A stretch of DNA of 64,000 nucleotides, taken from contig NIVC01002405.1 of the NCBI GenBank assembly GCA_002269645.1, forward strand, positions 62,001-126,000, in the 5' to 3' direction. Position 1 is the first letter of the stretch. Every line of letters begins with the position of its first letter. The stretch is from Macrostomum lignano (lineage: Eukaryota). The translations under genes were made by a program, and so were the position numbers. Positions 5,713 to 59,000 of this stretch are shown piece after piece. The notes beneath the pieces are model-generated. The model was given only the letters and a program-made list of their open reading frames with translations. It made no database searches and had not been told where the DNA came from.

Positions 5713-6056
5713 CTACTAAGGTGTTGCCGGTCACCGGTTTTATCTGTATTCTGATAAGCACAAAGCTTGCCAAACAAATTGCTTCCTGAGCACAGAGAGC
5801 TCATCCCCGGGCGTGTCGATTCTTAAGTTGGCCACAAACTCTGGCCTTCGCCTCGCCTTTGCTCGGACAGCCGCTACAACGGCGAGCTTAGGGTCGGATA
5901 AATGCTCCCCGACATCAGGTAAACAGCTTCTCGTAGTTCGCTGTGGCCTTCACAGCTGCCGGCCTAATCCATGAGCTATTTTATGTTAATAATTAAGACT
6001 GCGGAAATTTCCCCGAGCACGCTTCTCTCCGCAACAGTTGCTAACTGCAATCAGCT

Positions 6057-7190: not shown

Positions 7191-8319
7191 GCACTCCTCC
7201 CAGCCACCAGTCAGAGAGAAATGGCTTGCAATGCCTCAGTTCATTGTGAATAATGGTGCAGCTGCCCGAACGTCACCTCCACTCCCGGTTGGGCCTACAT
7301 CTCATCTCTATATCTAGCGTATTCACCACTGAGTCTTAGCCTTATAATTCTGAAATGAGATAGCATCTCATCTTTCCTTGAGCAATTTTTTGCACTCGGT
7401 CCAGCCTCTCCAAGATGTACTGCATCCCTTTGCGCATGTCCCCCGCAATATTGCCTGCTTATTAACGGTGCAGCTGCCATCCGGTCTCTCGGTCAGCGGC
7501 CTGTGCCGGGTCTGTTTACTCTGCCTCCAGCCAGTAGTGATTTCTCAAACTGTGCTCGCCACGGCATCAGTGCGTGCTCACTGCCTGCAATGCTCAGCCT
7601 TGCCCCCCGAGCTGAGCACTATCTGGAAAAACACTGGGCCACCTTCTCCTTCAGATAATCTCCTCAATTGAACCTTTTATCTCCATTGTCCTGCGTTTTC
7701 CCACCTCCCCACCTCCCCTCTCCCCTCTCCCTCTCTCCCCCTTTCCCTCGCACATCTTCGCCCATTCCATCGGCTTCCCGTCATCTCCGACTTGAATCAG
7801 TACAAAATGCACTGCTGCAAGACTAAACCTGCAATAGCATGACGTGCCCTCATCCGTGGAGAAGAGTTTAAATAGTCACCCCTGCTAGCCGGGCAGACTG
7901 TATTTAATTACCGACTGTTCTAAAGGAGAGCTTGGAAGACCCAAAAATCTCCCAGGAAAAAGCCAGCCAGGGCGAGATTCTAAGAAAAGGCAGCTCCCGA
8001 TTGCTGTCAAATTTGTGAGAAATGACCTAAAAGGTTTTGTATTTTAGCACAGGAACGGAGGCTGAGGAAACTTCTATGCTGGTTCTATCGATCCACTCTG
8101 GATTCCTTGCTGCTTTTACATTCCCAACCCTCTCCTGCTCTACAGCTTGCTCGTCCGTCAACTCGGAGGCTTGATGGTCTTCAACCAGCTGGCCTGGAAA
8201 CTGAGTGTCCGACATGCGCGCGTGTTATCACGGATTTGTACCGATTTGTACTAATCCAAGATATTGGAGCTTTCCCCACTCTCACCTACCTTATCTCTTC
8301 CTCATTCTATGATCTCTGG

Positions 8320-9483: not shown

Positions 9484-10611
<1,128 letters not shown>

Positions 10612-11039
10612 CTTAACTAGCCTTGCAACTAGCAGCACAAACCGGCAGTTTCAAGACAGGCAAAGCGGCTGAAAGCAGACTGGCTGGGGAGGGATATCGC
10701 TGGAATGAGGAGGAGGCGCATCCGGGCAGAGTGGGGGTAAGGGAGGCGGGCAGCAGAGTGCGCTCCTCCACTCCAATGGACGGTGGCCTGATACGTCCCT
10801 TCGCGTCCAGCTCGGGGGACCCGGCGACCCCCTCTGCCCCGACCGCACTCTGCCCGGCTGCAAAGCTCTCGCGCTCTCGGCCCGAAGCTGGCCGGGGATT
10901 CAGCCGGCGATTCACCGCTGCGAGCGACAGACAACCGCTGCCAGGCAGAGCCGATCCGCGCAACTGGGACGACAGCCCAACAGCAGGTGAGCCTGGGAGC
11001 TCGGGCTTCGCTTTTGGTGGCTTGTTGATCTAACAGGCT

Positions 11040-11630
11040 GAGCCTGAGGGAGGCTGAGAGAGAGACTGAGGAGACTGAAAGAGAGAGAGAGAGACTGGGA
11101 GTAGCGTAGCAGGGAGACTGAGAGGGAGACTGAGAGAGAGACTAAGCGGGAGGCTAAGAGGTAGCGTAGGAAGTAGACTGAGAGAGACTGAGAGTTAGGC
11201 CTGGGAGGGAGACTGAGGGAGACTGAGAGGGAGACTGAGGGAGACTGAGAGGGAGACTGAGAGGGAGACTGAGAGGGAGACTGAGAGGAGACTGAGAGGA
11301 GACTGAGAGGAGACTGAGAGGAGACTGAGAGGTAGGCCTGCGAGGCAGACTGAGAGGGAGACTGAGAGGAGACTGAGAGGGAGGCTGAGAGGTAGGCCTG
11401 GGAGGGAGACTGAGAGGAGACTGAGAGGGAGGCTGAGAGGTAGGCCTGGGAGGGAGAATGAGAGGTAGGCCTGCGAGGGAGACTGGGAGGGAGACTGGGA
11501 GGGAGACTGAGAGGTAGGCCTGGGAGGTAGGCCTGGGAGGGAGACTGAGAGGTAGGCCTGGGAGGGGAGACTGAGAGGTAGGCTGAGAGGGGAGGCTGAA
11601 AGGTAGGCTGAGAGGTAGGCTGAGGAGACT
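11040..11630. repeat. Purine-rich GAGACT/GGTAGGCCT low-complexity repeat
   Basis: Recurrent AGACTGAGAGG and GGTAGGCCTGGGAG units. Confidence 0.85.
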
Positions 11631-12558
11631 TGAGATCGACTGGCACTGAGGCAAAGGAAGCCGATAAGACCTGATTTTAGGGGCAGGGCCTCACAGAAAG
11701 GAGCAGCGCAGCCAGCTCGGGAACTGCCAAGCTTAACCAGGTCGCATCTCGGCAAAATTGGCAAGTCGCATTCAACCTGGTCCGGAAAGTGCACACAAGC
11801 CAGGCAGGTCTGCAGCCGCTGGGCCAAGTGCGCTTGCGCATGAGCGACTGCAGTGCAATGGCTGAACCGGGCATAGAGCGGGGTGCATGCAGGCGAAGGG
11901 AAGGCTGGGAGGATCAGAGTTCTGCCTTCCACTTTTGCTTCCCAAAATCGCTGCTCGCTTTCGCTTCCCATCTTCCCGCTCTCCCCTCCATTCTGAGAGC
12001 TCAACTGACTGGGGATTGGGAATCTGCTTGCTTTTGGTGTAGGAAAAAAATACGCCGAAGCCACTTTTCAGTCCTCCATCTTCTAATTCTTCATATCTGG
12101 GCATTCAACCGATTTTCAATTGGCACTTTAGCGCCAGTGCAGACTAAGGTGGTGGGGCTAAGCGTTGCAGCCAAGCCACGACCCCTGGACCCCGCATTCA
12201 GTTGGGGCTATCGTGTACGAAAGACTGGCTAGGGGTTAAGTTGCGTGCGAATCACACCCATGGGGGGCCAGCCCTTAAGGCACAGAGACTGTACATGCCT
12301 GATGGTTAGAAAGTCAGGGCCGCAGTACACTCTGTGTGTGACTGTCTTGAGTATCCGCGCGCTTGAATGTGCTCAGGAGCCAGCGGAATGGGCGATTGTC
12401 ACCCTGACCGGGTATACAAGGCGAAAGCCGCAACTCCCCAAAAATGCTAACACTGCATTAGCTGCACATCAGGCCTGTGTGTGCCCTAAATCCGCACATC
12501 GTTGCTCTTCGTTACTCAGGCAACTAAAGTGCATCTGCCCGTCAGCCACGCCGCAGCC

Positions 12559-21663: not shown

Positions 21664-22641
21664 TCAGCACATGCCGTCGAACTCGGCGAACTCTTCCTGA
21701 GAGACCTCCCTGGCCCAGTAAGCGAAGCAGAGCAGCCGGCCTTGCATAGCGTCGTTCACCGTTTCTCCGTGCTTGGCGCCCAGCTGGATGACGCTTCCAA
21801 TGGCGGTGGTGGAGGAAATGGTGCTGTACTGACTGACTGACTCCGATTTGCCGTTCAAGTAGGCGCTGTAGGCTCCGTTGTAGGAGATGCCAAACGAGTT
21901 GACAGACTTCGAGGCGGGAACCACGGGTCCCGTATAGTAATTCACGGTTACAGCTTTGCGGTTGCCAAACTTGATGCGTTGCGAGTCTTCGTAGGCCCAG
22001 AAGACAACCGTGTTCGAAGTGGACGCGGCCCTGACCAGGTAGGTTGAGTTGCCGCTCCTAGGCTGCCACTCGGCCTTGATAAACAGGGAAAACTGGCCGA
22101 GCGGGCCGGTCCTGGCCTCCAGACCGGAATCGTCGGGCGGCGGCAGCAGCAAGTAGGAGTCGCCCAGGCCGGAGGACAGGACGACTCCGCTGGCATTTCT
22201 CAGGGCGGCCGGCCCGACCAGCTCGGCCGGGCGGGCGCTGCTGTTGGCCAGGTTGCTCAGGGAGGCGCTCAGGCTCAGCCAGACCACCAGACGGTCAGTC
22301 AAGTTAGCTGGGGCTGTCGGCAGGCGGACCAGTGTGGCAGCTCCGTTGCTCTGACAACTTGACGAGGTTTTCCAAGCGTCTTGCCAATCGGATCGGGTGG
22401 CCAGGTAGCAGTCAGCGCCGAGGCGGTGCAGAGCGGAGCAGTTGGGCGACGCGGCGCACTCCACGGCGCAGGTGCTGGTAGCGACGATGCCACTGAGCCG
22501 CCTCGGCAAGGCCGAACGCTGCATCACGCTTGGACAGAACTGGCTGGCCTCAAACCGAACAGCGCCCGGCTGCTGCAGACCCAGCACCGCCTGCATCCGG
22601 CTGAAGAACAGTACAGTCAGCGGCACCACAGCTGGAAGCAT
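21664..22641 (-). CDS. Secreted protein with PAN/Apple-like and LamG/concanavalin-like domains, 325 aa, single coding exon
   Basis: Hydrophobic N-terminus. CAVECAASPNCSAL..CYL is the PAN/Apple cysteine pattern, and IQLGA..MQGRLLCFAYWAREVSQEEF resembles the LamG_3/pentraxin C-terminal motif. GC-rich codon usage. Confidence 0.8.
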   Translation of the reverse strand: MLPAVVPLTVLFFSRMQAVLGLQQPGAVRFEASQFCPSVMQRSALPRRLSGIVATSTCAVECAASPNCSALHRLGADCYLATRSDWQDAWKTSSSCQSNGAATLVRLPTAPANLTDRLVVWLSLSASLSNLANSSARPAELVGPAALRNASGVVLSSGLGDSYLLLPPPDDSGLEARTGPLGQFSLFIKAEWQPRSGNSTYLVRAASTSNTVVFWAYEDSQRIKFGNRKAVTVNYYTGPVVPASKSVNSFGISYNGAYSAYLNGKSESVSQYSTISSTTAIGSVIQLGAKHGETVNDAMQGRLLCFAYWAREVSQEEFAEFDGMC

Positions 22642-24309: not shown

Positions 24310-24605
24310 ACACGGCATGCTGGCAGTCCTAAAACAAACTTCTCGAATCGTCAATCCAATTAATCAATGTGTAAAAAATCAGACAAACTTTTATTCAGCA
24401 AAGAGAACTCCTAAAATTTTTACATACACAAAAGTTAGCTTTAAATTGTTTTACCCTTGTGTTTATCAAATTTTAATATTCAAGTAGTTGTTGTTTCCTA
24501 GAAAATGTGTCTGTAATTCCGACAGTACATTCCTATTCTCAGCTTACGTATTTCTTACTGTTACCTAACCTTCCTTGCTCGTTTTTATTTATATTTTAAT
24601 CCAGC

Positions 24606-24800
24606 ATGACTGCGATTATTAATAACATGCACTTTCGAATTTTCTTATTTTTATTGTCGATCGCGTGTTGCTTTGGACAGGCTCATGCATTCAATGCTGG
24701 TGACACAATCGCTTTGATTCTTGGATTGGCTATCGGGATCTTGGGAATTTGTGCGTGCATCGGCGTGTATGCCCGTAGAAAGGCAGGAAATTCTGGATGA
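24606..24800 (+). CDS. SMIM30: Small integral membrane protein 30 homolog (64 aa)
   Basis: AFNAGDTIALILGLAIGILGICACIGVYARRK matches my recall of human SMIM30 AVEAGDAIALLLGVVLSITGICACLGVYARKR. Acceptor CCAG lies just before the ATG, and a 3'UTR intron runs 24812 (GTAAGT) to 27256 (TTTCAG). Confidence 0.88.
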   Translation: MTAIINNMHFRIFLFLLSIACCFGQAHAFNAGDTIALILGLAIGILGICACIGVYARRKAGNSG

Positions 24801-28320: not shown

Positions 28321-30117
28321 ATTGTAGACATGACTCTGTCACCTAACAGTAGAAACCTTCATATCCTCTATATTTCACATTGTCAAACAATCAAATTAGC
28401 ATGCCATTTCGCAACTCCAAAATTTTATAAGACTTATGAAAGTGGTTAAGTTAAGAAAGTGGATTTCATAACTTAAGTCTTAATTTATGAAATCGATAAC
28501 TTAATAATACAATAAAACTTGGTGCTGTGGAATTTAGATCATATGAATATGAAAGTTTGGTCTTGTTAAACTTACAGTGTATTCAGTTTTTTTCGGTAAG
28601 CGATAAATTTTTATCAAAGCTGCCTCTTTAGAACCACGCGTCTGTCAAGGCAGTAAGTACATGTACAACATTTGGTCAGTTCACATAGCCACCGCGAAGG
28701 TCTCTGCACTTTTCCCCCAAGTCGTATTCCCAGAGAGTATTCCACGTATTCCAGTAGATAAAGACTCGATCCTTCTCCAGCAGTTGCGGGCGCTTCCTAC
28801 ACGGATGGCATGTCGAAATTTCTCCTGAAGCAGCCAGCAAGTACATGTAGTTGCTGTTGACAGCTGCACCACCTGGCACCGGCCCAGCAGGACGCCGCCT
28901 CGCACATCAAAGAAAATCACGTGCATGACATCCAGTCACTGCCTGCGGCCTCCCAGATAATTCGTTTGTCCTTCCCTGAACAACCAGCTAGAACCGCTTT
29001 CGCCCGTCGGATCAGATTGAGCCAAAAGTCCGTATACACCGGTTGCAGCCGCCTTGCAAACCATTTCTGGCGTCCGCTTGCTCTGCAGAAACTGGAACTT
29101 CATCACGACGCGCAGATCGGGATTCGTGAACGATTGCTGCATGGCCATCACAGACAGCTGGGAAGCATAGTGTGGAAGCATAGACGTCGGAACGTTTTAA
29201 AAAGAATTGGCGTGTTCCCCCATAGCTTTTACTGGGCTGGGGACATGTCCCCCTGTACCCTCGGTAAGCGACGCTCCTGCATAGAATTATCTTTTTTTAT
29301 GAAGTCCTCATCCACTAATTTAAGCACTCTATTTGGAGGAAAATATATTAAAAATTGCTAAAAAAAGTGGTGGGGACATGCCCCCCCCACGCCCCCCCCT
29401 CATTCTGACACCTATATGTGGAAGGAAGGCTATCCGTCTTATTGAGATGCATGTCTTAATTACATTAAAGGAAGCTTTCAATAGCCTATATTAGCCCTCG
29501 TTTTTTGTGGCGACGTTTCATTCGTGAAAAATTCTGTTTAAGCAACTAGAATTGTTATGCTAGTGAACCAAAAGCTGGAGCACAGTACTGGCTGATACTA
29601 AAAAACGGTCGACTTTATTCGTGTCATTTAAAAAAATATTGCCACATGCAAATCTAGTCTGTAGTCAAGCGCTCTATTGTCTGTACCCACGTACTGCAAT
29701 TTTCCGTTGCAAAAATGTCTTACTTTCTACTACGAGTAGAATAATTAGCTATTTGAAGCCTACCCGAAATTGCAATTCAAGTGTTAAGATCTGATTTCTA
29801 TTGAGTTTTCGAAACAATGAAAATAGTGGAAATTTTATTGCCAAAATGAATTAATCGATTAGACACAAAACAAGTCATACGGGACCATTGCAAACTTTTT
29901 GGGGTAGATTAGTTAGTTAATAATGTGCATAGAAGTAATGAATCTCTATAAACGGGATTGAGAAATACATGCTTGAGACTCACTATACTGTAAGTGTACA
30001 TCGGGCAATATGGCGTGTACGCAGTTAAAAAATTAAATGCATCAACGGCAACAGTGCGTACAAATATCAGACCCCTCCGAGCAAGATGCTGCAAAAGCAC
30101 CATGAAAATATGACAAC

Positions 30118-30139
30118 GAAAGCGAAAATTTTCGATTTC
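30118..30139. promoter_or_regulatory. Back-to-back inverted pair of IRF-E/ISRE-like cores upstream of UBL gene 1
   Basis: GAAAGCGAAAA|TTTTCGATTTC: two GAAANNGAAA cores forming a near-perfect 22-bp palindrome. Confidence 0.55.
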
Positions 30140-30235
30140 AAAATAACACCGCTTCTGGATCTGACTCAGATGCTCCAGAAATAGATTTTTTATTAATATC
30201 ATAGCGGGACTGCAAGGTGGGGCATGAGTCCAATT

Positions 30236-30244
30236 TTCTTGGAA
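30236..30244. promoter_or_regulatory. GAS/STAT-type site TTCTTGGAA upstream of UBL gene 1
   Basis: Matches TTCYNRGAA; 215 bp upstream of the TATA box. Confidence 0.45.
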
Positions 30245-30427
30245 AATCCAAGCAACATTCAGCAACTTGCTGACAGAGTACACGGTCTTATTGGCTCTCA
30301 GTCTGCGCTGTTCTCTGCTGTCCAATTCGCCCTCCGCACCCGTACCGACAGTCCGTGGGAGCCCCAGTCCCAAGGTCGGAATTGCTCGCTTATGATGAAA
30401 CCGCCGCGTCATGTCTAAAATTGGCGC

Positions 30428-30458
30428 CGAAATCGAAAACGGCGACAGTCTATATAAA
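30428..30458 (+). promoter_or_regulatory. IRF-E/ISRE-like 13-mer CGAAATCGAAAAC plus TATA box (TATATAAA) of UBL gene 1
   Basis: 13-mer at 30428-30440 is identical to 32856-32868; TATA at 30451-30458, 96 nt before the ATG. Confidence 0.65.
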
Positions 30459-30546
30459 CACGGCAAGGAAATGCCGTGGAAGAGCTAAGCGAGTGCAAGG
30501 CTTCAACTTCTAAAAATCTTGAGAAGGTCTGCTTTTTTAAGAAAAT

Positions 30547-31029
30547 ATGTCAGCAACGGACAATGCACAAAGGCAGCTCATCCGAAGGGCCATCGACAGC
30601 ATCGCTGATGGCAGCGCAGGCCAAGCCGCTCACTTGGAGCAGGAGCGGAGACGAGCTCTCGAGCTCCAGGCGGAGCTCCAAGCTGGCCCCCAGCTGCGTC
30701 CCGGCCTGCTGTCCGAGGCCGAGTCCGTGGCCGAGAACTACCTGCGGCAAGTCGGTCGGCTGGCCCCGAACGAGACTCTGATCGGCAACATGTCGGTCCG
30801 CGTGCACGGCACTGACGGGCGGCCGATCCAGGTGTCGGTGCCCCGCTGGGAAACCATGGAGTGGCTTCAGGAGCGGATCGGCGGCGGCGGCCTCATCATG
30901 AACGGTCGGCCAGTGGCCAAGGACAAGCCACTATTTGATCTTTGGCTGCGCAACCAGCTGGGCAGCCTGACGGTTGCCAATGGCAGCCAGCCCAGAGTGC
31001 AAAGCACGGTGCGCAACGCCGGCGGATGA
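30547..31029 (+). CDS. Ubiquitin-like protein 1 (160 aa): helical N-terminal extension + UBL domain ending in free GG
   Basis: Intronless GC-rich ORF. MSVRVHGTDGRPIQVSVPRWETMEWLQERI..LIMNGRPVAKDKPLFDLWL..VQSTVRNAGG* follows the ubiquitin beta-grasp pattern. A paralog lies at 33003. Confidence 0.85.
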   Translation: MSATDNAQRQLIRRAIDSIADGSAGQAAHLEQERRRALELQAELQAGPQLRPGLLSEAESVAENYLRQVGRLAPNETLIGNMSVRVHGTDGRPIQVSVPRWETMEWLQERIGGGGLIMNGRPVAKDKPLFDLWLRNQLGSLTVANGSQPRVQSTVRNAGG

Positions 31030-31372
31030 GCTTGGCTGGCCACTCGGTTAACTAATTTTTTTGCTTTACCCTTTTTTGCTAGTAGTCTTTATGGCAGCGG
31101 TGATTTTTAACTAACTGTATGGAAACATATTAAAGTCCCAAATGATCACGCGGGAAAAAAATCCGACTCATTTCCTGGAGCTTCTGAAACTTCACCTGGC
31201 TGCCGGAAGCATCCCATTTATATAGATTTAGATGAGTTTCGTGCATGTTTTTGTGTTGCTATGCGATGCTATTTTCGATAGCAAGACCTGAATACACGAG
31301 TTCATCTATATCTTATAAATGTACTTTAGCTAAGCTAACTGTAGCCTATGAGATCGGTTAGTAGCGGTCTGG

Positions 31373-31750
31373 GGGCGAGAGAGCAAGCTGGTCTGGCCCA
31401 GCTGAGCGGCAGCCCCCGGGGCGACGGCGACCAGGTGAAGACGGGGGGCTTCCGGGAACTTGCGTCGGAATTTATCCCATATTTGTCAAAAGCACCGCTG
31501 CTGTAAAACTGCATGCTGGCCCACACGGGGCCTTGATTGATTTTATGCTTGCTTATATACTCTATTTACTCTCGACTTTGTCCGTATGACAAACCAAAAA
31601 ACTCGCGCGTTAATTTTTCTAATTGAAATAATTTCGCTTCTCGATTTCTGCCGAATCAAAGCGGCCGACAAAAAGATTTTTTGACCCTCCTCGACGTCAC
31701 CCCGGGGGCTGCCGCTGGCAGCTGCGCCAGACCAGCTTGCTCTCTCGCCC
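31373..31750. repeat. ~58-bp GC-rich inverted repeat pair between the two UBL genes (MITE-like)
   Basis: 31373-31430 (GGGCGAGAGAGCAAGCTGGTCTGG..) is the reverse complement of 31691-31750 with few mismatches. No TSD found. Confidence 0.7.
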
Positions 31751-32467
31751 GCGATTTCTACTGTGATTTGCGGAACATCTACTGATTATAACAATATTTA
31801 AGTTCTATTTCTTATAATGGACTTATTCAAGAATTTAAACTTCTGCTTACGTACGAGTCGGGTTTACTGTAGAAGCTCGCCCGAAAATTCAATAAATAAC
31901 TTGTTATTATTTACTCATGAACTTTCTATTAATTACTAAATAATCAAAATCCCGACCACCAAATGCTTCAAACGACATGTGTGAAAATATACAGAAATTT
32001 TACTATAGTCCACCAAATAATAAAAATCCTAAGAAGTTAAAAAATTGTCTTTGACTCCCACGCGTTGTTAATCTTTTATTCCACATATTTAGTTGCTGAG
32101 CAGGAGGCATTTGGCTAACTTGGAAAATCCAACCTACAATAATTGTTTAACCTTCGGGGTGCTAAAAATAGAACGATTGGACTGCAGCTGCAACACTGCA
32201 TTAAGCCATGCAGCGTACACTTCTGCTTACTGCCTCCGGCCGTTACAAAACGCCTACAAGGTGAAAAATTTCAATATTTTAAACCATCCTCTAATCACTC
32301 AAAGAACAAATCCGGTAAAATAAACTTTTATTCGTCAGAGCTTGGCGCCTTCAGTTCGTGGTAGAATTGAATTTTTAAATCATTTATCTCATGAGGTCAG
32401 CCTTATACATGTAGAAAGGCTTGGATGCTGTACTCGTAGTCTCATGGATGCATTCTTGTAGATTCTA

Positions 32468-32628
32468 CACGCAGGCCACATGTCAGCCGCGAAGCCTCTC
32501 TATCCGGCCCTCGGGTCCTTCGAAACTTCAAAATAGCAATCCGGCCTGCTCAATCTTCTCAGCTCTCTTCTCATCCCTTTCTTCTCTCCTCCTATTCTGT
32601 CTCTTATCTCTTCTCTCATCTCTCAAGG
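32468..32628 (-). mobile_element. Fragment of the hAT/Charlie-like MITE family also at 47290 and 50609
   Basis: GGCCACATG..GCCGCGAAGCCTCTCTATCCGGCCCTCGGGTCC..GAAACTT..AATAGCAATC is the reverse complement of segment 50990-51070. Confidence 0.7.
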
Positions 32629-32708
32629 CCATTGATTATTTATCTGGCCCTTGAAGTGTAGAAGCTGAATATAGAAGTGAGGATTTTTACACAAATTTTT
32701 CGAACAGT

Positions 32709-32747
32709 TTCTAGGAAATTGTCGTTTTCCTAAAACATTTCTAGGAA
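32709..32747. promoter_or_regulatory. Tandem GAS/STAT-type sites TTCTAGGAA x2 upstream of UBL gene 2
   Basis: Sites at 32709-32717 and 32739-32747, 227 and 197 bp upstream of the TATA box. Confidence 0.5.
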
Positions 32748-32855
32748 ATAGCAAACGGCATCTCTCATCCAAAAATAGGCATAGGAGGGCTACGCACGTT
32801 CACATACTGACGAATTTTTTTAAAAAACTGACACCGTCACTGCTAAACTTAGCAT

Positions 32856-32942
32856 CGAAATCGAAAACTCTGACTCATCTAGAGCCGATTCGAACTTCGA
32901 CACACAGAGTCGCAGCAGCCCCGGAGACTGTCATCTATAAAA
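32856..32942 (+). promoter_or_regulatory. IRF-E/ISRE-like 13-mer CGAAATCGAAAAC plus TATA box (TATAAAA) of UBL gene 2
   Basis: 13-mer at 32856-32868; TATA at 32936-32942, 67 nt before the ATG. Confidence 0.65.
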
Positions 32943-33002
32943 GCAGCCAGCCACAATGGCTCGGCCCTGTAAAATCCACGGACTGCTCCAACAGATTGAG
33001 AC

Positions 33003-33506
33003 ATGGCCAGCCGACAGCAGAGCGAGCAACTCACCCGTAGAGCCATTGCCAGCGTAGCCGACGGCAGTGCCGCCAAAGGGCCTGCATCGGAGGCTGCTGA
33101 GAACGAGCGGAGACGAGCTCAGGACCTGCAGTCGGAGCTTCAGGCCGGAGGGCGACCGCGGCCCGGCCTGCTGTCGGAGGCGCAGTCCTTGGCCGAGTCC
33201 TACCTGCGACTGGTGGGCCGCCTCGCGCCCGGAGAGAGCCTGCCGGACGCCATGACTGTCAGGGTTCGCCGAGCTGACGGTCGGGAGTTCGAGGTCCACG
33301 CGGCCAGGTGGGAGACGGTCGGCCGACTCAAGGAGCTCATCAGGCAGTGGCAGGGCAACTTCGGGGGCCTCACCGTACGCGGTGGGGCGCTGAATGACGA
33401 CGCCCGGCTGTTGTATGACATGTGGCTGCGCGATGAACTGGGCAGCAGGACCAGCCCGAACCCGCCCCCTGTGCAGCTCATTGTGACGGGCAACTACGGC
33501 GGCTGA
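33003..33506 (+). CDS. Ubiquitin-like protein 2 (167 aa), paralog of 30547-31029, ending in free GG
   Basis: MTVRVRRADGREFEVHAARWETVGRLKELI..LTVRGGALNDDARLLYDMWL..VQLIVTGNYGG*. It shares RRAI.S.ADGSA, ERRRA..LQ.ELQAG, RPGLLSEA.S.AE.YLR.VGRLAP with paralog 1. Confidence 0.87.
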   Translation: MASRQQSEQLTRRAIASVADGSAAKGPASEAAENERRRAQDLQSELQAGGRPRPGLLSEAQSLAESYLRLVGRLAPGESLPDAMTVRVRRADGREFEVHAARWETVGRLKELIRQWQGNFGGLTVRGGALNDDARLLYDMWLRDELGSRTSPNPPPVQLIVTGNYGG

Positions 33507-35301
33507 ACTGTAAGAGTACAGTTTGAAAACAATCTCCAAATAATTAAGACTTGTTAAACTTTCTGTTTCTATCGACTTGCTCGGTTTTATTCGTAATCTA
33601 GCATAACCGTACTTGTAATAAAAGAGTGATATTTTATGGAGTGCTTATCTACATGTTTGAAAACGTTGTACATATTGAGATATTGCAAATTAAAATTCTT
33701 CCATTTCTTGTTTGTTGTTTGTTAAAATTTCGTTTATAATACTTACTAGTAGGCTGGTTGGAAAAAGGCTGGTAATATTTTGGCTACATGGCAAAATGCT
33801 ACTAACTAACTCTGGTTCTTACCGCGTAGGTAAATTCAGTCATCAGTAAGAGAATCGATTATGCAGTCGCAGTCCTCTCGCGGTTTTGGCTACTGGTTTA
33901 ATTCTGATCTATCTTAGCGGACTAACTGGTCTTTAATTTGTAGGTTGCTGCCCACCAGGTTCCTGAGATTCCCTAATCCTAGTGTTTAGCGATTAAAGAA
34001 TTGAGAAAGGAATCCAGGAGATTATTTTTTTGAAAGATTTATAACAAGAATTCAATAGGTGGATATATTAATATTAATCCCCTCAGGTGCAAACTCCCCA
34101 ACTCTCTGTCTATCCATTAACATTTTCCAAGCTAAAACTACTGATGTACTGTTTAAAGCATATCTACCCTAATAAAATTAACTTACGTGTACATTGAAAC
34201 TGCGGTAGGCCCGAATGTAAAAAGTAATATAAGTAATATTTACATAGGCCCGAAATGTAAAAAACCGAAATATCGCAAGCCCGAGATACGAGCTATCCGA
34301 ACTAATCAACTCCGAAAACGAAAATAGCGTTGGGCGCTGCTAACACTTTCAGGTTTGTGATATTTCGGGTTCGTGATGCCCCGACTTACGAGTATCGAGT
34401 ACGTGTGCATTTAAACTTAGGCGCCAGAGCAATGACCCAATCTTCGATGACCTGTCTCCATGTATGACCCGAAGGCAATCAAAAAGGCACACCAAACGCG
34501 GGAGGGTCGATTTAGGCGAAGTCATCAAGCAGGAGCGTCGAGTCCAATGATTCGTAGCCATCCCGTTGCAAGGCAGCCTGAACAACAAAGACCAGACCAT
34601 CTCACGCGATCCCAATAGCCTTTTTGCTGCGGATAAACAAACGATCAAAGAACTGCATTTGGCGGCCCCTAAAAGAGTCTAGACCCTCTAGGCATAGATT
34701 TTATTTATTGATGAGCTGCCCAAAAATACGGCCCCATTCCAATCTTTTCAAGCTTCTTTGATAGCCGCAATGTGGCTTTGAATTTTGAGTTGTCCATCCA
34801 TCTGCCACTTTTCCAGTTATCCAATTTAGCTGCATCCTTTGATACACCCATCGGAGACAATTCCTTTGGGAATGCAGCACATGCTGCGATCGCACGGTGT
34901 GCCCCACCACCTACTCAATCCGGGCTTGTATATAAATTTCATCCCCAAGAATCCTGAGCGATGGGATAAAAAATTCATCCGCTCTCTACAGCAGTGTAGC
35001 CGGTAAGCTACTAACAGTGACATGATTTCGATCAGCACACACTGAACTGCTGGACTTTTTCAAGAACCGTCATGCAGAGCAGAGATACTCCAAAAGCATT
35101 TGCCTGCCCGCATTAGCAGGCGCTCCACTAAGAATTTTTATGCTCCCTGATTTTAAGAGCAAATGCTCTCAGAGCCGACAGTCTAGCTATTGCAGTTAAT
35201 GCACGATTTAAGCCATTGAAGCAAGGTACCCAGCTGCTACACTTCATCATTTTAAAAACTGAGACTAGGCTAATTTTACATTATTAACCCGCAGCGCATA
35301 C

Positions 35302-36396
35302 ATGAATTCCTCCGCGGCCAACGACTCGACAGGCAACGGCGCAGCCGGCCAGTACACGCCGTGGTACTGGGACCCCAGCTGGAACTTTTTCGTTCGCCAC
35401 GTCTTCTCTTGGCTCTTCCCAGTCCTGGTATTGAGCGGCGGTTTTCTTAATGCCGCTTGTTTCATCGTCACGGCTGCCAATAGAAAGTCATTTCCTAGAA
35501 ACAGCCGGCTTTACATGCTGATGATTAGCGCCACCGATACTGTGATCCTTCTGGCCCAGGGCCCAATCTACTACTTGGAGATCACGACTATCCTAGTCAC
35601 GAATCCGCAGTCCTGGTATCGGCCGGTGCGCAGTCTGAGCGCTGTAGTGATGCGCATCTATTACATCCTCACTTACCTGTTGGTGTTCGGGGCTCCGTTT
35701 TTGCAGCTGGGCCTCACAGTCGACCGCGCCGTCGCTGTCTGTTTTCCGTTGAAGGCCAAGCAGCTGATGAATCGACGAAACAGCGCCATCTTGCTAGCCA
35801 TCGTTCTGCTCCTGACCGTGTCCTTCCCCGCCCTGACCATCTACCTGATTGAGTGGGATCCGGAGCTTCGAGACGTGAGTGTAGTCGATGATGATGCGTA
35901 TTACATATTTTACACGCAGTACGAGCTCTATGTTGGCCGCCTGATGCTGGCCGTCCTGCTGCTGCTGGGCACCACGCTGATCTGCGTCATGCTGCTGCGC
36001 AGCGCCCGCGGCCTCGGCGAGACGAACGACGGCGACGACAAGAGGAAGAGTCGCGCCATTCGGCTCAGCCTGGTGCTGGTCATTCTCAACGTCAACTTCC
36101 TGATGTTCACGCTCCCATGGAGCCTGCTCAGCGCCACTGAGACATTTGGGGCCTTGGACTGGATACCCCTCAAAGATCGGAATCGCATCTTTGAGTACCT
36201 GAACGCGCTACTGTTTATGAATAACGCCTTCAACTGGATGGCCTACTTCATGGGCCAGGGGTTCCGCGCCAACTTCGTGGCCACGTTCCGCCTCGACCGC
36301 TGCTTCGGCAACCCGGGCGGCGGCCGGGGCCGCGCGGGCTCCACCTACACAGGGAAAACTTCGACCGTTTCAGGGCCCGCCGTCACAGCTACCTGA
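35302..36396 (+). CDS. Class A (rhodopsin-like) GPCR, peptide-receptor-like, intronless, 364 aa
   Basis: Seven hydrophobic segments. Motifs: TM1 GGFLN, TM2 ISATD, TM3 DRAVAVCFPL, TM6 FLMFTLPW, TM7 NNAFNWMAY, and helix 8 FRANF. N-terminal sequons NSS and NDS. Confidence 0.93.
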   Translation: MNSSAANDSTGNGAAGQYTPWYWDPSWNFFVRHVFSWLFPVLVLSGGFLNAACFIVTAANRKSFPRNSRLYMLMISATDTVILLAQGPIYYLEITTILVTNPQSWYRPVRSLSAVVMRIYYILTYLLVFGAPFLQLGLTVDRAVAVCFPLKAKQLMNRRNSAILLAIVLLLTVSFPALTIYLIEWDPELRDVSVVDDDAYYIFYTQYELYVGRLMLAVLLLLGTTLICVMLLRSARGLGETNDGDDKRKSRAIRLSLVLVILNVNFLMFTLPWSLLSATETFGALDWIPLKDRNRIFEYLNALLFMNNAFNWMAYFMGQGFRANFVATFRLDRCFGNPGGGRGRAGSTYTGKTSTVSGPAVTAT

Positions 36397-37069
36397 GCTG
36401 CATGCTGAAGCTGACTGACGTTGAACAATATTTTGCCAGCTGACTATGCATCGCAAATATTACATTTCCCACTCGAAACGCAAAAAATCTGCAACTTCTC
36501 TGACGAATAAATATTAGAGAAGTGATACTCAACCAAATGCGTTTCGTACTACTCGTTAGACGGATATATTGCAAACAAAAAATAAAATAAAAAATTCATA
36601 ACTTCAATACCTCATGTCCAATGCGTTCTTTCATTTCGTTTCAAGCGCAAATCTTAGAACACACAACAGACTTTTGATGGCTTAGCCTTTCAGAGATTCA
36701 CGTTTAGCAGAAATCGGAAGGAAGCAAGCAAAAGCATGAGGCAAAATATCTACCATCTTTCGCAGTGACAAAGACTTCAAACTTTTGTGACTTGACTTCT
36801 TGTGTCAAAAATAAAACCCCTCAGTGCAAGCGCAATCATCATTTATCAGTGGAAAATAATAAATTTTGATAGACTCCCGAATCATAACGAAAGAACGAAG
36901 CATTGATGGCTCTTGTCCCCTTTAGTCGCAACATAAAACTCCTGCATTATACTGGCTAACTCGTTTTATTGGTTTGCACTGCGGCCCGGGGACAATTGTT
37001 TTCGAAACTCCTGAACCCATTGGCTCCACATCCCAGCGGGCTGTGAGCTGATGTTAATGCTCCATTCTC

Positions 37070-38170
37070 CTTGTCCCCCCTGTGCCCTCTGTCCCCCCTG
37101 TGCCCTCTGTGTCCCCCTGTGCCCTCTGTCCCCCCTGTGCCCTCTGTGTCCCCCTGTGCCCTCTGTCCCCCCTGTGCCCTCTGTCCCCCCTGTGCCCTCT
37201 GTCCCCCCTGTGCCCTCTGTGTCCCCCCTGTGCCCTCTGTGTCCCTGTGCCCTCTGTCCCCCTGTGCCCTCTGTGTCCCCCTGTGCCCTCTGTGTCCCCC
37301 TGTGCCCTCTGTGTCCCCCTGTGCCCTCTGTGTCCCTGTGCCCTCTGTCCCCCCTGTGCCCTCTGTGTCCCGCTGTGCCCTCTGTGTCCCGCTGTGCCCT
37401 CTGTGTCCCCCTGTGCCCTCTGTGTCCCCCCTGTGCCCTCTGTGTCCCCTGTGCCCTCAGTGTACCCTAGCTGTGCCCTCTGTCCCCCCTGTGCCCTCTG
37501 TCCCCCTGTGCCCTCTGTGTCCCCTGTGCCCTCTGTGTCCCCCTGTGCCCTCTGTGTCCCCCTGTGCCCTCTGTCCCCCTGTGCCCTCTGTCCCCCTGTG
37601 CCCTCTGTGTCCCCCTGTGCCCTCTGTGTCCCCTGTGCCCTCTGTCCCCTGTGCCCTCTGTCCCCCCTGTGCCCTCTGTGTTCCCTAGCTGTGCCCTCTG
37701 TCCCCCCTGTGCCCTCTGTCCCCCTGTGCCCTCTGTGTCCCCCTGTGCCCTCTGTGTCCCCCTGTGCCCTCTGTCCCCCTGTGCCCTCTGTCCCCCCTGT
37801 GCCCTCTGTGTACCCTAGCTGTGCCCTCTGTCCCCCCTGTGCCCTCTGTCCCCCTGTGCCCTCTGTGTCCCCCTGTGCCCTCTGTGTCCCCCTGTGCCCT
37901 CTGTCCCCCTGTGCCCTCTGTGTCCCCCTGTGCCCTCTGTGTCCCCCTGTGCCCTCTGTGTCCCCCTGTGCCCTCTGTCCCCCCTGTGCCCTCTGTGTCC
38001 CCCTGTGCCCTCTGTGTCCCCCTGTGCCCTCTGTCCCCCCTGTGCCCTCTGTGTCCCCCTGTGCCCTCTGTCCCCCTGTGCCCTCTGTCCCCCCTGTGCC
38101 CTCTGTGTCCCCCTGTGCCCTCTGTCCCCCCTGTGCCCTCTGTCCACCTGTGCCCTCTGTCCCCCTGTCC
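37070..38170. repeat. ~16-19-bp minisatellite (CTGTGCCCTCTGTGTCCCC variants)
   Basis: Long tandem array; source of the PLCP/VPSV ORFs. Confidence 0.97.
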
Positions 38171-49282: not shown

Positions 49283-51410
49283 TCAGAGTCGCAAGTCCAG
49301 CATCTCCTGCGGCGAATCCGCCAGCGTCTCCCGCCGACGCGCCAGGCCTTCAAGGAGGCGCCGCCGCGGCCCCAGCGGCAGACCGAGGCTCTGCAGGTCC
49401 GGCTCGGAGCACAGGGCGAGCCCGTCCAGATCCAGGTGCTCGCGGGTCAGCAGGTGGTGGTAGTCGGCCAGGCCCAGGCACTCCAGGAACGTCTCCAGCG
49501 TCGACGGCTCCCCGTCAATGTCGTCTCCGTCGCCGAAATTCTCGAGGCCATCCATATCGTAGTCCGGCGCCAGCGTGGTGACGTCCGCCTCCGTCCACTG
49601 CATGTCGCGCCAGGGCTGCAGCACCAGGCTGGCCGAGGTGCCGATGGACTCCCGGCCGAGAGTCCGGTTGGGCGACGCCGGCGGAGGGAACAGCAGCTGC
49701 AGCGACTGGGGCAGCTGCGGCGAGTTCGGCGAGTTTGGAAACTGCGGCGAGTGCGGCGAGTGCGACGGGTGCGGATTCAACGAATTCGGCGACTGCGGCG
49801 ACTGCGGCTGCGGTGGTTGCAGGAAGGCGACGTTACCGAAGCCGGGCCGCTCGAAGAGGCCGGGGACGCCGCGCGGAGGCTCCGCCGCTGCCCCTGCTGC
49901 CGACGCTGCCGCGGAAGCTGAGGCGAGCGAGCGGCCGTCGGCCGAGCGGGCGTACATGATGTCCGCCTCGGGCATCGGGCTGCGCTGCAACTTCGGATTC
50001 GGCGACGTGGCCGACGAGAAAAATGCCCCGCCACCGGTTGCCGCAGCTCCGGACGGCGAGGGCGACCCGGCGACGATGTTGGAGTAGGGTCTCGCCGTCT
50101 GGTTGGTCCGCTCCAGCACCACGCTGACACCGTCGGCAACGGCGGAGGTCGATGCGGACCCCTGCGCGTGCCGGTAGTTGGGGTTGGTCGCCGACGGGTG
50201 CAGGTCGCAGGCGTCGCTGCTCTCCCTCGCAGCCCGCCGGTCGGCCTTCTTCATCAGCTTGTCCCGCTTCTTAGCTCGGCGCTGCGCCTCCAAGACGGCC
50301 TTCTCGCGCATCTTCGCCACCGTCCGCTTGTTCACCTCGGCCTGGCGGCCCGCCACGTCGTCCAGGAAGTCGACAATGTCGCGGTGCTCGTTCAGCGCTG
50401 CAAGGTCAAGCGCCGAGTGGAGATCGACGTCCAGCGTCCAGATGTTGGCGCCAAAGTTGACCAGGTAGGTGACGCAGTTCATGCGGCCGTTGAGGGCTGC
50501 AAAGTGCAGCGCCGTGCTGCCCATGTGATCTGCGCGGTCGGGGTCCGCGCTGTCAAAGAGGGCGATGGTAAAATTTGGTGATTTGCTTTGTCGAAGTTAG
50601 CATCTAGACAAGGGTCGGCAAACTTTTTCAACGTAAGGGTCAGATATAAAATCTAGCGCATGACTGCGGGCCAGAGAGTGAGGAGAGTAGAGAAGAGAGG
50701 AGATAAGAGAGGAGATAAGAGAGGAGATAAGAGAGGAGCGTGGAGATGAGAGGAGAGGGAAGAGAAGGGAGGCGTGGGGAGAGGGGAGAGAGGGAAGATG
50801 AGGGGAGAAAGGAGAGAAGAAAGAGGAGAGGGGAGAGAGGAAGGGGGAGAGGAGGGAAGGAATAGGAGAGGGGATATGTGGGGAGAGAAGATAGGCCAGA
50901 TGAGAGATGAGAGATGAGAGATGGGAGGGTAGATGAGTGGAGAGAAGAGAGGAGGGATAGGAGACCTGAGAAGAGACACAAACCTTGAGCGGGCCAGATT
51001 GCTATTGTAAAGTTTCATGGACCTGAGGGCTGGATAGAGAGGCTTCGCGAGCCGCATGTGGCCCGCGGGCCGGAGTTTGCCGACCCCTAATCTAGGGACA
51101 CACGGAAAGACATCTACTCGTGGAGACACGAAGAAATAAAAAAACGCAGAAAAATTGACAGACGCAGCACCCATAGAGACCCTCTCTGGGTCTAGAAACA
51201 CAGAGTGACATTCTGTAGACTCAATCGTCAGCCTCACCCGCGACCCATGAGGACTCGCAGTGCCTCCAGGTGACCATAGAACGCTGCCCACATCACCGGC
51301 GTCATGCCGTTATCGTCTACCGCGTCGCATTCGCTTCGGGTGGCCTCCCGCAGCAGGTCCAAATAGTTGTCCTTGGCTGCCTGGTGGAAGCGCTCCTTGT
51401 GGCGGGTCAT
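49283..51410 (-). CDS. USH1G: SANS/USH1G (ANKS4B family): ankyrin repeats, central Myo7-binding region, SAM domain; 479 aa
   Basis: Exons 51410-51238 and 50549-49283 with a phase-2 intron in GRG|G as I recall for human USH1G. Motifs: ERFHQAAKDNYLDLLREAT..GMTPVMWAAFYGHLE, LVNFGANIWTLD, central LFERPGFGNVAF, SAM LETFLECLGL..EHLDLDGLALCSEPDLQSLGLPLGPRRRLL. Confidence 0.93.
50609..51089 (+). mobile_element. hAT/Charlie-like MITE in USH1G intron
   Basis: Ends CAAGGGTCGGCAAACT and AGTTTGCCGACCCCTA; GGCCCGCGGGCC subterminal palindrome; flanks ATCTAGAC/ATCTAGGG resemble the NTCTAGAN Charlie target; internal purine-rich expansion. Confidence 0.8.
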
Positions 51411-56097: not shown

Positions 56098-59000
56098 CAG
56101 TAGCAGTAGCAGTAGCAATAGCAGTAGCAGTAGCAGTAGCAGCAGCAGTTGCAGAAGCAATAGCAGTAGCAGCAGCAGTTGCAGAAGCAATAACAGTAGC
56201 AGCAGCAGTTGCAGAAGCAATAGCAGCAGCAGAAGTTGCAATAGCAGTAAGCAAGCGCAATTCCCCATCCCCAGGTGCGCGAGCTGCACCAGATCCACCG
56301 CATCCTACAGATCTCGCTGCACGCCGCGGCCCTGTCCTGGGACACCAACGAGCAGGTTGGCCACATCCTGACCGCCTCCTTCTCCAAGAGCCTGGTGCTG
56401 AAGACCTACGCCGCCTTCATCAACACGTATCCGCGCGGCCTGGAGCTCGTCAGGCGCCAGATGAAGGACAACGCGCCGTTCGCCAGCTTCCTCGGCACGG
56501 CGCAGCGGCGCAGTTCGCACAAGCTGCCTCTGCTGGGCATCCTGGTGCGTCCGGTGCAGCGCTTCCCCCAGCTGCTGCTGGTGGTCAAGGACCTGCTGAA
56601 GTACACGGAGCCCGACCATCCTGACCGGTACGACCTGCTGTACGCGCAGACTCAGATCGAGCACCTGGCCAGCCAGCTCAACGACATCAAGCGCGACAGC
56701 GAGCAGCTCATCTCGGCGCGCCAGATGCTCCGCGCCCTGGGCGTCCACTCCAAGTCGGCGCTGAAAAACTCGCGAATCCGCATCGTCCGCGAGGATGACG
56801 TCAGCGAGCTCCGGGCAGACCGGCAGCAGCAGCACGCGGGCGGCATGCGGATCATCCTGACGACCTACTATGTCCTCTGCACGGGTGCCAGGCGCCGCGG
56901 CGGCCCACAGGAGCTGCTGTGGTACACCAAGCTGGAGGATGTCCGCCTGTCCGGGACCTCGCTAACGCCTGACATGAAGGTCTGTTCGAATTGAATTTTA
57001 GTTCAGTTTGCAGTCAGCAATTTCCAGGGGCGTCGCTATGGATTTTATGGTGGTGGGGGACCGAACTAAGAATTCTACACGTACGTGTACATTATTTTCA
57101 GAATTGGTGTTGTCAGCGCTTATTTTGGCGCCGCAGGCACTCATTTTGGCGCCGCAGGCTCTCATTTTGGCGCCGCAGGCACTCATTTTGGCGTCGCAGG
57201 CACTCATTTTGGCGCCGCAGGCACTCATTTTGGCGCCGCAGGCACTCATTTTGGCACCGAAGGCACTCATTTTGGCGCCGCAGGCACTCATTTTGGCGTC
57301 GCAGGCACTCATTTTGGTGCCGCAGGCACTCATTTTGGCGCCGCAGGCACTCATTTTGGCGCCGCAGGCACTCATTTTGGCGCCGCAGGCACTCATTTTG
57401 GCGTCGCAGGCACTCATTTTGGTGCCGCAGGCACTCATTTTGGCGCCGCAGGCACTCATTTTGGCGCCGCAGGCACTCATTTTGGCGCTGCAGGCACTCA
57501 TTTTGGCGCCGAGGGACTCATTTTGGCGCCGAAGGCACTCATTTTGGCGTCGCAGACACTCATTTTGGCGGCGAGGGACTCATTTTGGCGCCGAAGGCAC
57601 TCATTTTGGTGCCGCAGGCACTCATTTTGGCGTCGCAGGCACTCATTTTGGCGCCGAGGCACTCATTTTGGCGCCGAGGGACTCATTTTGGCGCCGCAGG
57701 CACTCATTTTGGCGCCGCAGGCACTCATTTTGGCGCCGAGGGACTCATTTTGGCGCCGAAGGCACTCATTTTGGCGCCGCAGGCACTCATTATGGCGCCG
57801 CAGGCACTCATTTTGGCGCCGCAGGCAATCATTTTGGAGCCACAGGCAATGATTTTAGCGCCACAGACAATAATTTTGGCGTCACAGGCACTCATTTTGG
57901 CGTCACAGGCACTCATATGGAATTATTATGGGAATTATTGATTTCCATAACGGATCACAAGGTTGGGTGGGGGGGGGGGCAAAGCATTGGAATATACCAG
58001 CTTCTCGTGACTAAACTGTATTTTGCCTAACCGGCAATTTGAGAAAGTGGCATCAGAGGGGATGTTGAACCATCCGAGTCTAAGAATGGAAGCAGGACTA
58101 TCAGCGGATGGCTCTGTTTGCAGTCTTGGTGATTACTGATGACTTCCTGACTAAGTTGGCATCCTCAAAAGGTGCAAAACAGGGAACTGATCAAAGTTCG
58201 CCAACCCATTCGCGACAGGTGAATCTGGAGGAGGTCAGCAACTACCTGAGGATTGTGTCGCAGCGCAGCACGGAGGTGCCAGAAGAGCTGGAGGAGATCT
58301 ACAACAGCCTGCACAGCCTGCTGCACGATCACGCGGTCCTGGTGAAGATCCTCAGCCTGGTCTCCACTCTCAACTTCATTTACCCGGACGTGCGGGAGGA
58401 CCGGCTGCAGGCGCTGCTTGGCAACATGCAGGTGGCCATCCAGCAGAAGAACGAGGAGCTGCGCGTGGCCCAGGGCACCGTGCTGGCGCTCACCGTCAGA
58501 CGGGGCATCCTCGGCGGCGGCGGCGGTGAAGTCAGCCAGTCGATCAGCAGGAAGGCATTCGACATGCGCAACAGCAGGGCCAGAGACGACTGGACCAGCG
58601 AGTTCACCATCCTGAGGCTGGCCCTGCAGCCGGAGAACAATGCGGCGTGGATCACCGAGATGCTGGACGACTTGGGCCTGCAGTCGCATCAGCGGACGCC
58701 GCTGCTGGTTGGCGTCAAGGCGTGCGACCTGAGCAGGTCGATGTTCCAGGTGGGCTGCTGGGGGCTACGCGGGTTTGCAGTGCGAACGCTTTTTTGAGAA
58801 AATTTTCTAGGGAGGAGAAAATAGCCGAAGATGTACATTTGCTAGGGGGAGAAAATAGCCGAAGATGTACATTTGCCAGGGAGGAGAGAAAATAGCCGAA
58901 GATGTACATTTGCTAGGGGGAGAAAATAGTAGCAGATGTACATTTGCTAGGGGGAGAAAATAGTAGCAGATGTACATTTGCCAGGGAGCAGAGAAAATAG

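Follow-up and report, generated by a model that had tools for sequence, protein, structure and literature searches.

Putative ubiquitin-like modifiers with a free terminal Gly-Gly and a predicted three-helix domain encoded by a tandem gene pair of Macrostomum lignano

The flatworm Macrostomum lignano carries, on contig NIVC01002405.1 (assembly GCA_002269645.1), two neighboring genes whose products stop directly after two glycines, and this locus raises the question of whether they are ubiquitin-like (UBL) modifiers that could be attached to other proteins. We analyzed a 64-kb stretch of this contig (the window; all coordinates refer to it unless another locus is named). Based on the list of open reading frames (ORFs) and the sequence, paralog 1 (P1) is encoded at 30547-31029 (+) and comprises 160 amino acids (aa) plus stop, while paralog 2 (P2) is encoded at 33003-33506 (+) and comprises 167 aa plus stop. 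An initial annotation had described the two as intronless tandem paralogs; the coordinates and the lack of introns held, and the two proteins share 51% identity from end to end (E 5e-43). P1 ends in TVRNAGG and P2 in VTGNYGG, each followed by the stop codon (*). The reading that we develop here, and to which we give about an even chance, is that of a genus-restricted UBL protein that is made in its mature form and is putatively competent for conjugation.

P1 and P2 are real, expressed genes. A comparison of the paralogs, as had been proposed with the initial annotation, gave a ratio of nonsynonymous to synonymous divergence (dN/dS) of 0.36 at a dS of ~1.07 (Nei-Gojobori), and with the same method, the ratio was 0.30 for the N-terminal and 0.43 for the C-terminal half. 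A relative from the Sequence Read Archive (SRA), P0064, gave 0.27 and 0.36 against P1 and P2, respectively, at a dS of 1.1-1.2. The M. lignano genome is neopolyploid, and we found the tandem pair on three genomic copies (NIVC01002405, NIVC01000406.1, and NIVC01003112.1). The homeologous copies of P1 have 17 base differences with a dN/dS of 0.26 and an unchanged tail, while those of P2 have a single, synonymous base difference; P2 (P0001) is carried by two M. lignano contigs. No reading frame is disrupted in any of the three genomic copies or in the SRA relative, and P1 and P2 are under purifying selection. In the 64-kb window, there is no further copy of P1 or P2. The start-to-start spacing of the two genes is 2456 nucleotides (nt) in the window, 2266 nt on NIVC01003112.1 (locus L005, 3735-6504), and 4418 nt on NIVC01000406.1 (locus L002, 5583-10504), and this unequal spacing therefore implies an insertion of ~2 kb between the genes in the homeologous copy on NIVC01000406.1.

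The proteins match hypothetical proteins in GenBank exactly or nearly (BOX15_Mlig030606g2, Mlig027467g2, and Mlig033779g1): P1 is identical to a cluster of M. lignano proteins that includes BOX15_Mlig027467g2, and a cluster mate of P2 is PAA53219.1 (UniProt A0A267DXA5). The GenBank annotation of M. lignano was made from a genome-guided RNA-seq transcriptome with ORFs called by TransDecoder (PMC5730564). Because the GenBank models derive from an RNA-seq transcriptome, both loci are transcribed into mRNA with the same C-terminus; splicing to another C-terminus, which had been named as a way in which the annotation could fail, is thus not what these models show. At the other end, each ORF is preceded by an in-frame stop with no other possible start codon in between, and an N-terminal extension is therefore impossible without splicing. 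Likely poly(A) signals follow P1 (ATTAAA, 31129-31134, +, 100 nt past the stop) and P2 (AATAAA, 33617-33622, +, 111 nt past the stop). The GC content at third codon positions (GC3) is 78-80% in the two genes, and the flanks are AT-richer. Neither protein has a hydrophobic segment, a signal peptide, or a membrane segment (maximum Kyte-Doolittle score over 19 residues, 0.42), and the products are small and soluble. P1 and P2 have two lysines each and P0064 (locus L004, 46-543) has none in 160-167 residues, together with 17-21 arginines and no cysteine, while a distant third paralog has eight lysines and four cysteines. A reading of these proteins as lysine deserts was rejected: neighboring ORFs likewise contain 2-2.6% lysine, so the signal is weak and the depletion mild.

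The C-terminal half had been annotated as a beta-grasp, and structural modeling, fold comparison, and profile searches bear this out. In the full-length AlphaFold2 (AF2) model of P2, built from a two-sequence alignment, three helices are followed by a bb-a-b-a-b arrangement of strands (b) and helices (a), with a mean predicted local distance difference test (pLDDT) score of 70.5 and a predicted template modeling (pTM) score of 0.63. The predicted beta-grasp covers aa 83-167 of P2 (33249-33503, +), a region supported also by Foldseek and by HMMER hits to polyubiquitins, and is made up of b83-89, b95-101, a106-117, b122-125, a137-148, b157-162, and the tail GNYGG; pLDDT is 50-76 in this half. 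The equivalent region of P1, aa 80-160 (30784-31026, +), ends in R-N-A-G-G and is homologous to the modeled P2 domain, and the family profile corresponds to residues 1-60 of ubiquitin. Foldseek matched the P2 model to the C-terminal domain of ISG15, NEDD8, ubiquitin, and SUMO in the PDB (E 2e-4 to 1e-3, probability 1.00), with template modeling (TM) scores, normalized to the target, of 0.71-0.81 over ~87-97 columns of the C-terminal half.

Searches with the family profile point in the same direction. Against the PDB, the profile matched di-ubiquitin (3e-5), mono-ubiquitin (6e-3), and ISG15 (0.01), and hhalign aligned the family to ubiquitin residues 1-60 with a P of 9e-4. An exhaustive HMMER search of 1.84 billion representatives returned polyubiquitin-like repeat proteins at 6e-14 to 1e-4, where the large scores are the sum of many repeats at ~9 bits each. 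The Pfam ubiquitin family PF00240 was hit by P2-type members only and missed the threshold (E 0.081; 13.1 bits versus a cutoff of 25.4). Across the family, Pfam returned sub-threshold matches to ubiquitin, Ubiquitin_4, and EACC1, on the first strand-helix region only; one Spc29 hit was judged spurious. A single-sequence search of the PDB with P2 yielded only a chance match to Prp3. The family-invariant positions include the equivalents of ubiquitin L43 and G47, and UniProt automatically labels P2 and the third paralog as "Ubiquitin-like domain-containing protein." Because the AF2 model, Foldseek, and weak per-domain sequence evidence agree, these data support that the C-terminal half is a ubiquitin-type beta-grasp that is strongly diverged.

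Does the tail have what a conjugated modifier needs? The Gly-Gly codons are GGC GGA in P1 (31021-31026, +) and GGC GGC in P2 (33498-33503, +), each with TGA directly after. As originally read, VRNAGG* and TGNYGG* are thus the true ends; there is no C-terminal propeptide, and the free Gly-Gly requires no processing. Counting back from the C-terminus, the position of ubiquitin residue 72 is Arg in P1 and Gly in P2, also as annotated. In the family alignment, the P1 tail is one residue shorter than the P2 tail. The tail extends 5-6 residues past the last predicted strand, a length also seen in ubiquitin-type modifiers, and, with a pLDDT of ~50, is predicted to be flexible.

Including the third paralog and P0064, the family has four lineages, which end in NAGG*, NYGG*, NVGG*, and GSG*, with the stop codon directly after Gly in all of them. 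This sample is small: a single species accounts for three of the lineages as paralog groups, and the fourth is a sequence from SRA run SRR28338163. Within this sample, the last Gly and the position of the stop are invariant in four of four lineages, while the penultimate Gly is present in three of four and is Ser in the distant paralog. The terminal codons (GGC GGA, GGC GGC, GGA GGC, and AGC GGC) show synonymous turnover of Gly. Since Gly makes up ~11% of these proteins, a chance GG end is expected in ~1% of proteins, and a terminal GG by itself is not rare. The survival of GG between the 51%-identical P1 and P2 is accordingly modest evidence of selection. The stronger point is the Gly-stop at the ubiquitin-76-equivalent position in four diverged lineages, as judged from the aligned ends. 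Of the original proposal that selection acts on the diglycine, the part that concerns the last Gly and the stop therefore stands, while the end GRCGSG* of the distant paralog departs from it at the penultimate position. A Gly directly before the stop is the minimal requirement shared by ATG8, ATG12, UFM1, and the GG-ended modifiers.

The UBL domain is preceded by ~80 aa that had been described as conserved, helical, and unrecognized, and all three attributes hold. AF2 predicts a three-helix bundle in aa 1-82 of P2 (33003-33248, +; helices 2-20, 30-47, and 56-70), and aa 1-79 of P1 (30547-30783, +) align with this region. When the 82 N-terminal residues of P2 were modeled alone, pLDDT was 84 with a pTM of 0.69, and we regard the bundle as a confident prediction. 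P1 and P2 have in common the block RRAI.S.ADGSA...ERRRA..LQ.ELQAG..RPGLLSEA.S.AE.YLR.VGRLAP. Foldseek found nothing in the PDB below E 1.7 for this bundle, the best match being the HSP70 lid domain, and no Pfam family matched the N-terminal domain of any family member at E up to 10. A UBA domain was rejected, based on helices of 15-19 residues over ~70 residues compared with ~40 residues for UBA, and on the lack of a Pfam match and of a Foldseek match below E 1.7; a BAG domain was rejected for lack of a Pfam match at E up to 10.

To describe the distribution of the family, we combined the exhaustive HMMER search over 1.84 billion representatives with word-indexed searches over 5.8 billion clusters. 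Only the four lineages were found: P1, P2, the distant M. lignano paralog, and the SRA relative. Neither search returned a relative from any other animal. A word-indexed search with P2 alone recovered P2 only and missed P1, and profile searches added one Logan contig. Thus, as far as seen so far, the family is restricted to one flatworm lineage and to Macrostomum-type data, in line with the lineage-specific family initially proposed. The SRA relative P0064 (165 aa; 1.3-kb Logan contig of SRR28338163) ends in TVRNVGG* and shares 59% identity with P1 and 51% with P2. The third paralog (P0023/P0063; Mlig019373g1 and Mlig025000g1; contig NIVC01001929.1, locus L003, 10001-13266) is 33% identical to P2 over helix 3 and the UBL domain, and protein identity among the most distant lineages is 25-33%. 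The gene of the third paralog contains two introns, one of which falls precisely where the UBL domain begins, and its product of 189 aa starts with MAPR in the UniProt version and ends in QQVGRCGSG*. A signal peptide suggested by the partial GenBank model of this paralog was dismissed; the hydrophobic stretch is translated 5' untranslated region upstream of the real ATG. The first intron, of ~1.9 kb, is almost entirely a (TATC)n microsatellite, and the second contains a tRNA-like stretch (~12690-12770 of L003) that is possibly a short interspersed nuclear element. The claim of novelty holds in part: we found no publication on these proteins in the full text and supplements of M. lignano papers, while the proteins are already present in GenBank as hypothetical, and two of them carry the UBL-domain label in UniProt. 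What is new is the combination of an orphan, predicted three-helix domain, a highly diverged UBL domain, and a free terminal GG, in Macrostomum-type data only.

The promoters of the two genes are compact and resemble each other. P1 has a TATA box, TATATAAA, at 30451-30458 (+), 96 nt upstream of the ATG, and the 5' end of the P1 transcript in a partial GenBank model (P0060) lies downstream of it; the TATA box of P2, TATAAAAG, is at 32936-32943 (+), 67 nt upstream of the ATG. A conserved 34-nt block ending in the IRF/ISRE-like (interferon-stimulated response element) sequence CGAAATCGAAAAC is present at 30407-30440 (+) in P1 and at 32835-32868 (+) in P2, and the two blocks are 79% identical; CGAAATCGAAAAC is located 118 nt (P1) and 146 nt (P2) upstream of the ATG. 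The sequence CGAAANCGAAAA occurs four times in the window compared with 0.01 expected, and three of the four occurrences are in the P1 and P2 promoters. The fourth, CGAAAACGAAAA at 34313, is within a small inverted repeat (34262-34371). Further upstream of P1 are a distal palindromic pair, CGAAAGCGAAAATTTTCGATTTC, at 30117-30140 (+) and the palindrome TTTCTTGGAAAATCCAAG at 30235-30252 (+), which is similar to STAT gamma-activated sites (GAS) and to Rel/NFAT sites, while two TTTCTAGGAAA palindromes, 30 nt apart, are found upstream of P2 (32708-32748, +). The motif TTTCNNGGAAA was observed six times in the window (0.73 expected), three of them in the P1 and P2 promoters, and it is located 312 nt upstream of the ATG in P1, 295 and 265 nt in P2, and 285 nt in the third paralog (9803-9820 of L003). 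A 26-nt version, AATTTTCYTGGAAAATCCAMG, is common to the upstream regions of P1 and the third paralog in nearly identical form. TTTCNNGGAAA and GAAATCGAAAAC are promoter motifs of the paralog genes. TATA boxes together with STAT/Rel-like and IRF-like motifs are common to all three paralog promoters, and the promoter motifs are kept in all homeologous copies.

We take these motifs to resemble IRF/ISRE (GAAANNGAAA), STAT GAS (TTCN3GAA), and Rel/NFAT (GGAAAATCC) sites. Compact, intronless TATA promoters with such motifs hint at expression that may be stimulus-induced rather than constitutive. In the planarian Schmidtea, a diverged IRF homolog and seven Rel-homology factors have been reported (PMC13563047); because of that report, such regulators are conceivable in flatworms, and it has no bearing on P1 and P2 themselves. 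Carried to its end, this line of thought leads to an inducible Macrostomum tagging system parallel to ISG15 and FAT10, with the three-helix domain as "cargo," IRF/STAT/Rel-like switching after infection, wounding, or stress, and either existing or dedicated E1 and E2 enzymes (activating and conjugating, respectively) that would link the UBL protein to its targets via the terminal Gly. We consider such a system improbable.

How would P1 and P2 work as modifiers? As a putative type I UBL modifier, each would be translated already mature, in the manner of FAT10 and URM1. An E1 would adenylate the terminal Gly and take up the UBL protein as a thioester, and an E2, possibly with an E3 (ligase), would pass it on to lysines of target proteins; with it, the target would acquire a further surface for interactions, the helical domain. 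The structural features of a type I modifier, a terminal Gly on a flexible tail that is conserved among relatives, are present as far as the sequence allows this to be judged. Several observations count against conjugation. The likeness of a single domain to ubiquitin is weak (Pfam E 0.08, below threshold), and the large HMMER scores are sums over repeats, as stated above. The diglycine itself is not invariant, since the distant paralog ends in GSG*. The Ile44 patch is variable as well, with T, I, I, and L opposite ubiquitin I44 in the family alignment. With a two-sequence AF2 model and a pLDDT of 49-57 in the last strand and tail, the alignment of the tail with ubiquitin could be off by one residue. 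Neither an E1-like nor an E2-like gene is present in the 64-kb window, the genes are absent from the papers and expression tables searched, and the reading of the promoter motifs as transcription factor sites draws on consensus sequences.

The main alternative is that P1 and P2 are type II UBL-domain proteins that are never conjugated. The beta-grasp would then dock non-covalently on a partner, e.g., a chaperone, a receptor of the proteasome, or a protein specific to the lineage, the bundle would bind elsewhere, and the Gly-Gly would be a terminus without chemistry, kept by inheritance or for structural convenience; one form of the same idea is a decoy, which would occupy an E1 or a deubiquitinase but never be passed on. 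Most UBL-containing proteins are of this kind, and the Ser at the penultimate position of the distant paralog, the varying hydrophobic-patch positions, and the fact that partner enzymes are not evident in the window are all compatible with it. The N-terminal domain, moreover, is at least as conserved as the UBL domain (dN/dS 0.30 versus 0.43), which fits a two-module adaptor. An unused tail would not be expected to end with the precision seen here: in four lineages, with a dS of >1 or a protein identity of only 25-33% between them, the stop directly follows the Gly equivalent to ubiquitin-76. In typical adaptors, the UBL domain also has no terminal GG and tends to be located internally or at the N-terminus, and neither a Pfam match to UBX, UBA, or BAG at E 10 nor a UBX domain among the top 50 fold matches was found. 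We regard non-conjugated proteins as a serious possibility, rated somewhat short of an even chance.

Two further explanations deny the locus a selected function. In one, a ubiquitin or UBL gene gave rise to P1 and P2 as degenerating relics (e.g., a retrocopy joined to sequence of other origin), which are transcribed and in which the GG is simply left over from the ancestor. A relic would account for the lack of introns in P1 and P2, as opposed to the distant paralog, for a tiny family confined to one genus-level lineage, and for the very low similarity to ubiquitin; purifying selection on both halves (dN/dS 0.27-0.43) at saturating synonymous divergence, homeologous P2 copies that differ by one synonymous change only, frames that are intact in three genomic copies and the SRA relative, and conserved promoter blocks make it very unlikely. 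In the other, the ORFs are chance frames in GC-rich DNA. Long antisense ORFs over both genes (32931-33539, -, 202 aa; 30550-30807, -, 85 aa) show that the base composition can yield spurious ORFs; the antisense ORFs themselves are most likely a by-product of a coding strand with a GC3 of 78-80% and not genes. This explanation is refuted for P1 and P2 by a dN/dS well below 1 with 51% protein identity at a dS of ~1, a foldable two-domain model (pLDDT 70-84), GenBank models built on transcripts, and a homolog from a separate data set.

If P1 and P2 are indeed conjugated modifiers, they would provide a compact case for the origin of new conjugation substrates or of new E1 specificities. New UBL modifiers are rare, and the lineage-restricted ISG15 and FAT10 mark antiviral defense and immune proteolysis. 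If they are not conjugated, they are ordinary orphan UBL-domain proteins of local interest. Among flatworms, transgenesis is established in M. lignano only (PMC5730564), and a comparison of the wild-type protein with a GG mutant is therefore feasible.

The surroundings of the pair were also inspected. Just downstream, at 35302-36396 (+), an uninterrupted ORF of 364 aa matches 7tm_1 (E 2e-10) and also the Srg and Srx chemoreceptor profiles, and represents an intronless gene for a rhodopsin-family G protein-coupled receptor. Other ORFs in the window, at 49283-50524 (-), 58108-58797 (+), 60154-61875 (+), and 21664-22641 (-), are not akin to ubiquitin enzymes and encode ankyrin repeats with SAM, PH_19 followed by a WD40_2/LRRK2-type propeller (the two are likely exons of a single gene), and a domain with a weak match to Laminin_G_3. 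A called gene of 64 aa at 24606-24800 (+; 1604-1798 of locus L001) has a Pfam DUF4730 hit, and a TTTCTAGGAAA motif is located nearby at 24494. A 378-nt element (31373-31750) lies between P1 and P2; its terminal inverted repeats of ~64 nt are 97% and 87% complementary, its folding energy is -189 kcal/mol (z -10), and it resembles a miniature inverted-repeat transposable element; weak likeness to its arms is seen ~310 nt downstream of the P0064 gene (854-878 and 1022-1038 of L004). Rfam returned no match to a structured RNA in 29000-35000, including this element. Strand skew is extreme at 6001-8000 (GC skew -0.49), 10001-12000 (+0.40), and 36001-38000 (-0.28), with matching AT skew; together with overlapping long ORFs in several frames on both strands, this points to low-complexity or satellite DNA.

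Compared with ubiquitin and NEDD8, the proposed modifiers share the beta-grasp (TM 0.72-0.81 on the target), a profile that aligns to ubiquitin 1-60, and a flexible tail with Gly-Gly at the equivalent of positions 75-76. They differ in identity (~15-21%), in a Pfam ubiquitin match that stays sub-threshold, in tails of RNAGG (P1) and GNYGG (P2) as opposed to LRLRGG and LALRGG, in an insertion of ~11 residues before the last strand, in the 80-residue N-terminal helical domain, in the lack of a C-terminal propeptide or fusion partner, and in being confined to one flatworm lineage. In URM1 and FAT10, the Gly-Gly is free as soon as the protein is translated and no maturation step is required, and P1 and P2 resemble them in this respect; URM1, however, lacks an N-terminal domain and occurs in all eukaryotes, and membership in that group was rejected based on the lack of any sequence or fold match to URM1, MoaD, or ThiS. 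Adaptors of the UBA-UBX and UBL-UBA types likewise combine a small helical bundle and a beta-grasp in one polypeptide. The strand 3-4 loops of the family (RGGALND, NGRPVAK, GGRPLNP, and NGAAVSN) contain no FPR loop, there is no Pfam UBX match, and the beta-grasp matches modifiers and not UBX, and we therefore rejected UBX adaptors as well.

ATG8 and ATG12 have a helical or extended N-terminal addition before a beta-grasp with a C-terminal attachment Gly, a layout that P1 and P2 are predicted to resemble. Because a single terminal Gly suffices for ATG8 and ATG12, the distant paralog, which ends in GSG*, would be in keeping with their pattern. In P1 and P2, however, the predicted extension is a self-contained 80-residue bundle and not a pair of short helices that pack against the UBL domain, and Pfam Atg8 and APG12 gave no match at E 10 and are absent from the top 50 Foldseek matches, so that membership in this group was rejected. 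The C-terminal domain of ISG15 is the best fold match (E 2e-4) and a profile hit (E 0.01), although NEDD8, ubiquitin, and SUMO are not told apart from ISG15 by fold score. With ISG15 and FAT10, P1 and P2 have in common a length of ~160 aa, an N-terminal module ahead of the UBL domain, lineage restriction, and promoters carrying GAAANNGAAA and TTCNNNGAA, which resemble the ISRE and GAS consensus sequences. They are set apart from both by tails of VRNAGG (P1) and TGNYGG (P2) in place of LRLRGG and CYCIGG, and by an N-terminal module that is a predicted three-helix bundle and not a second UBL domain.

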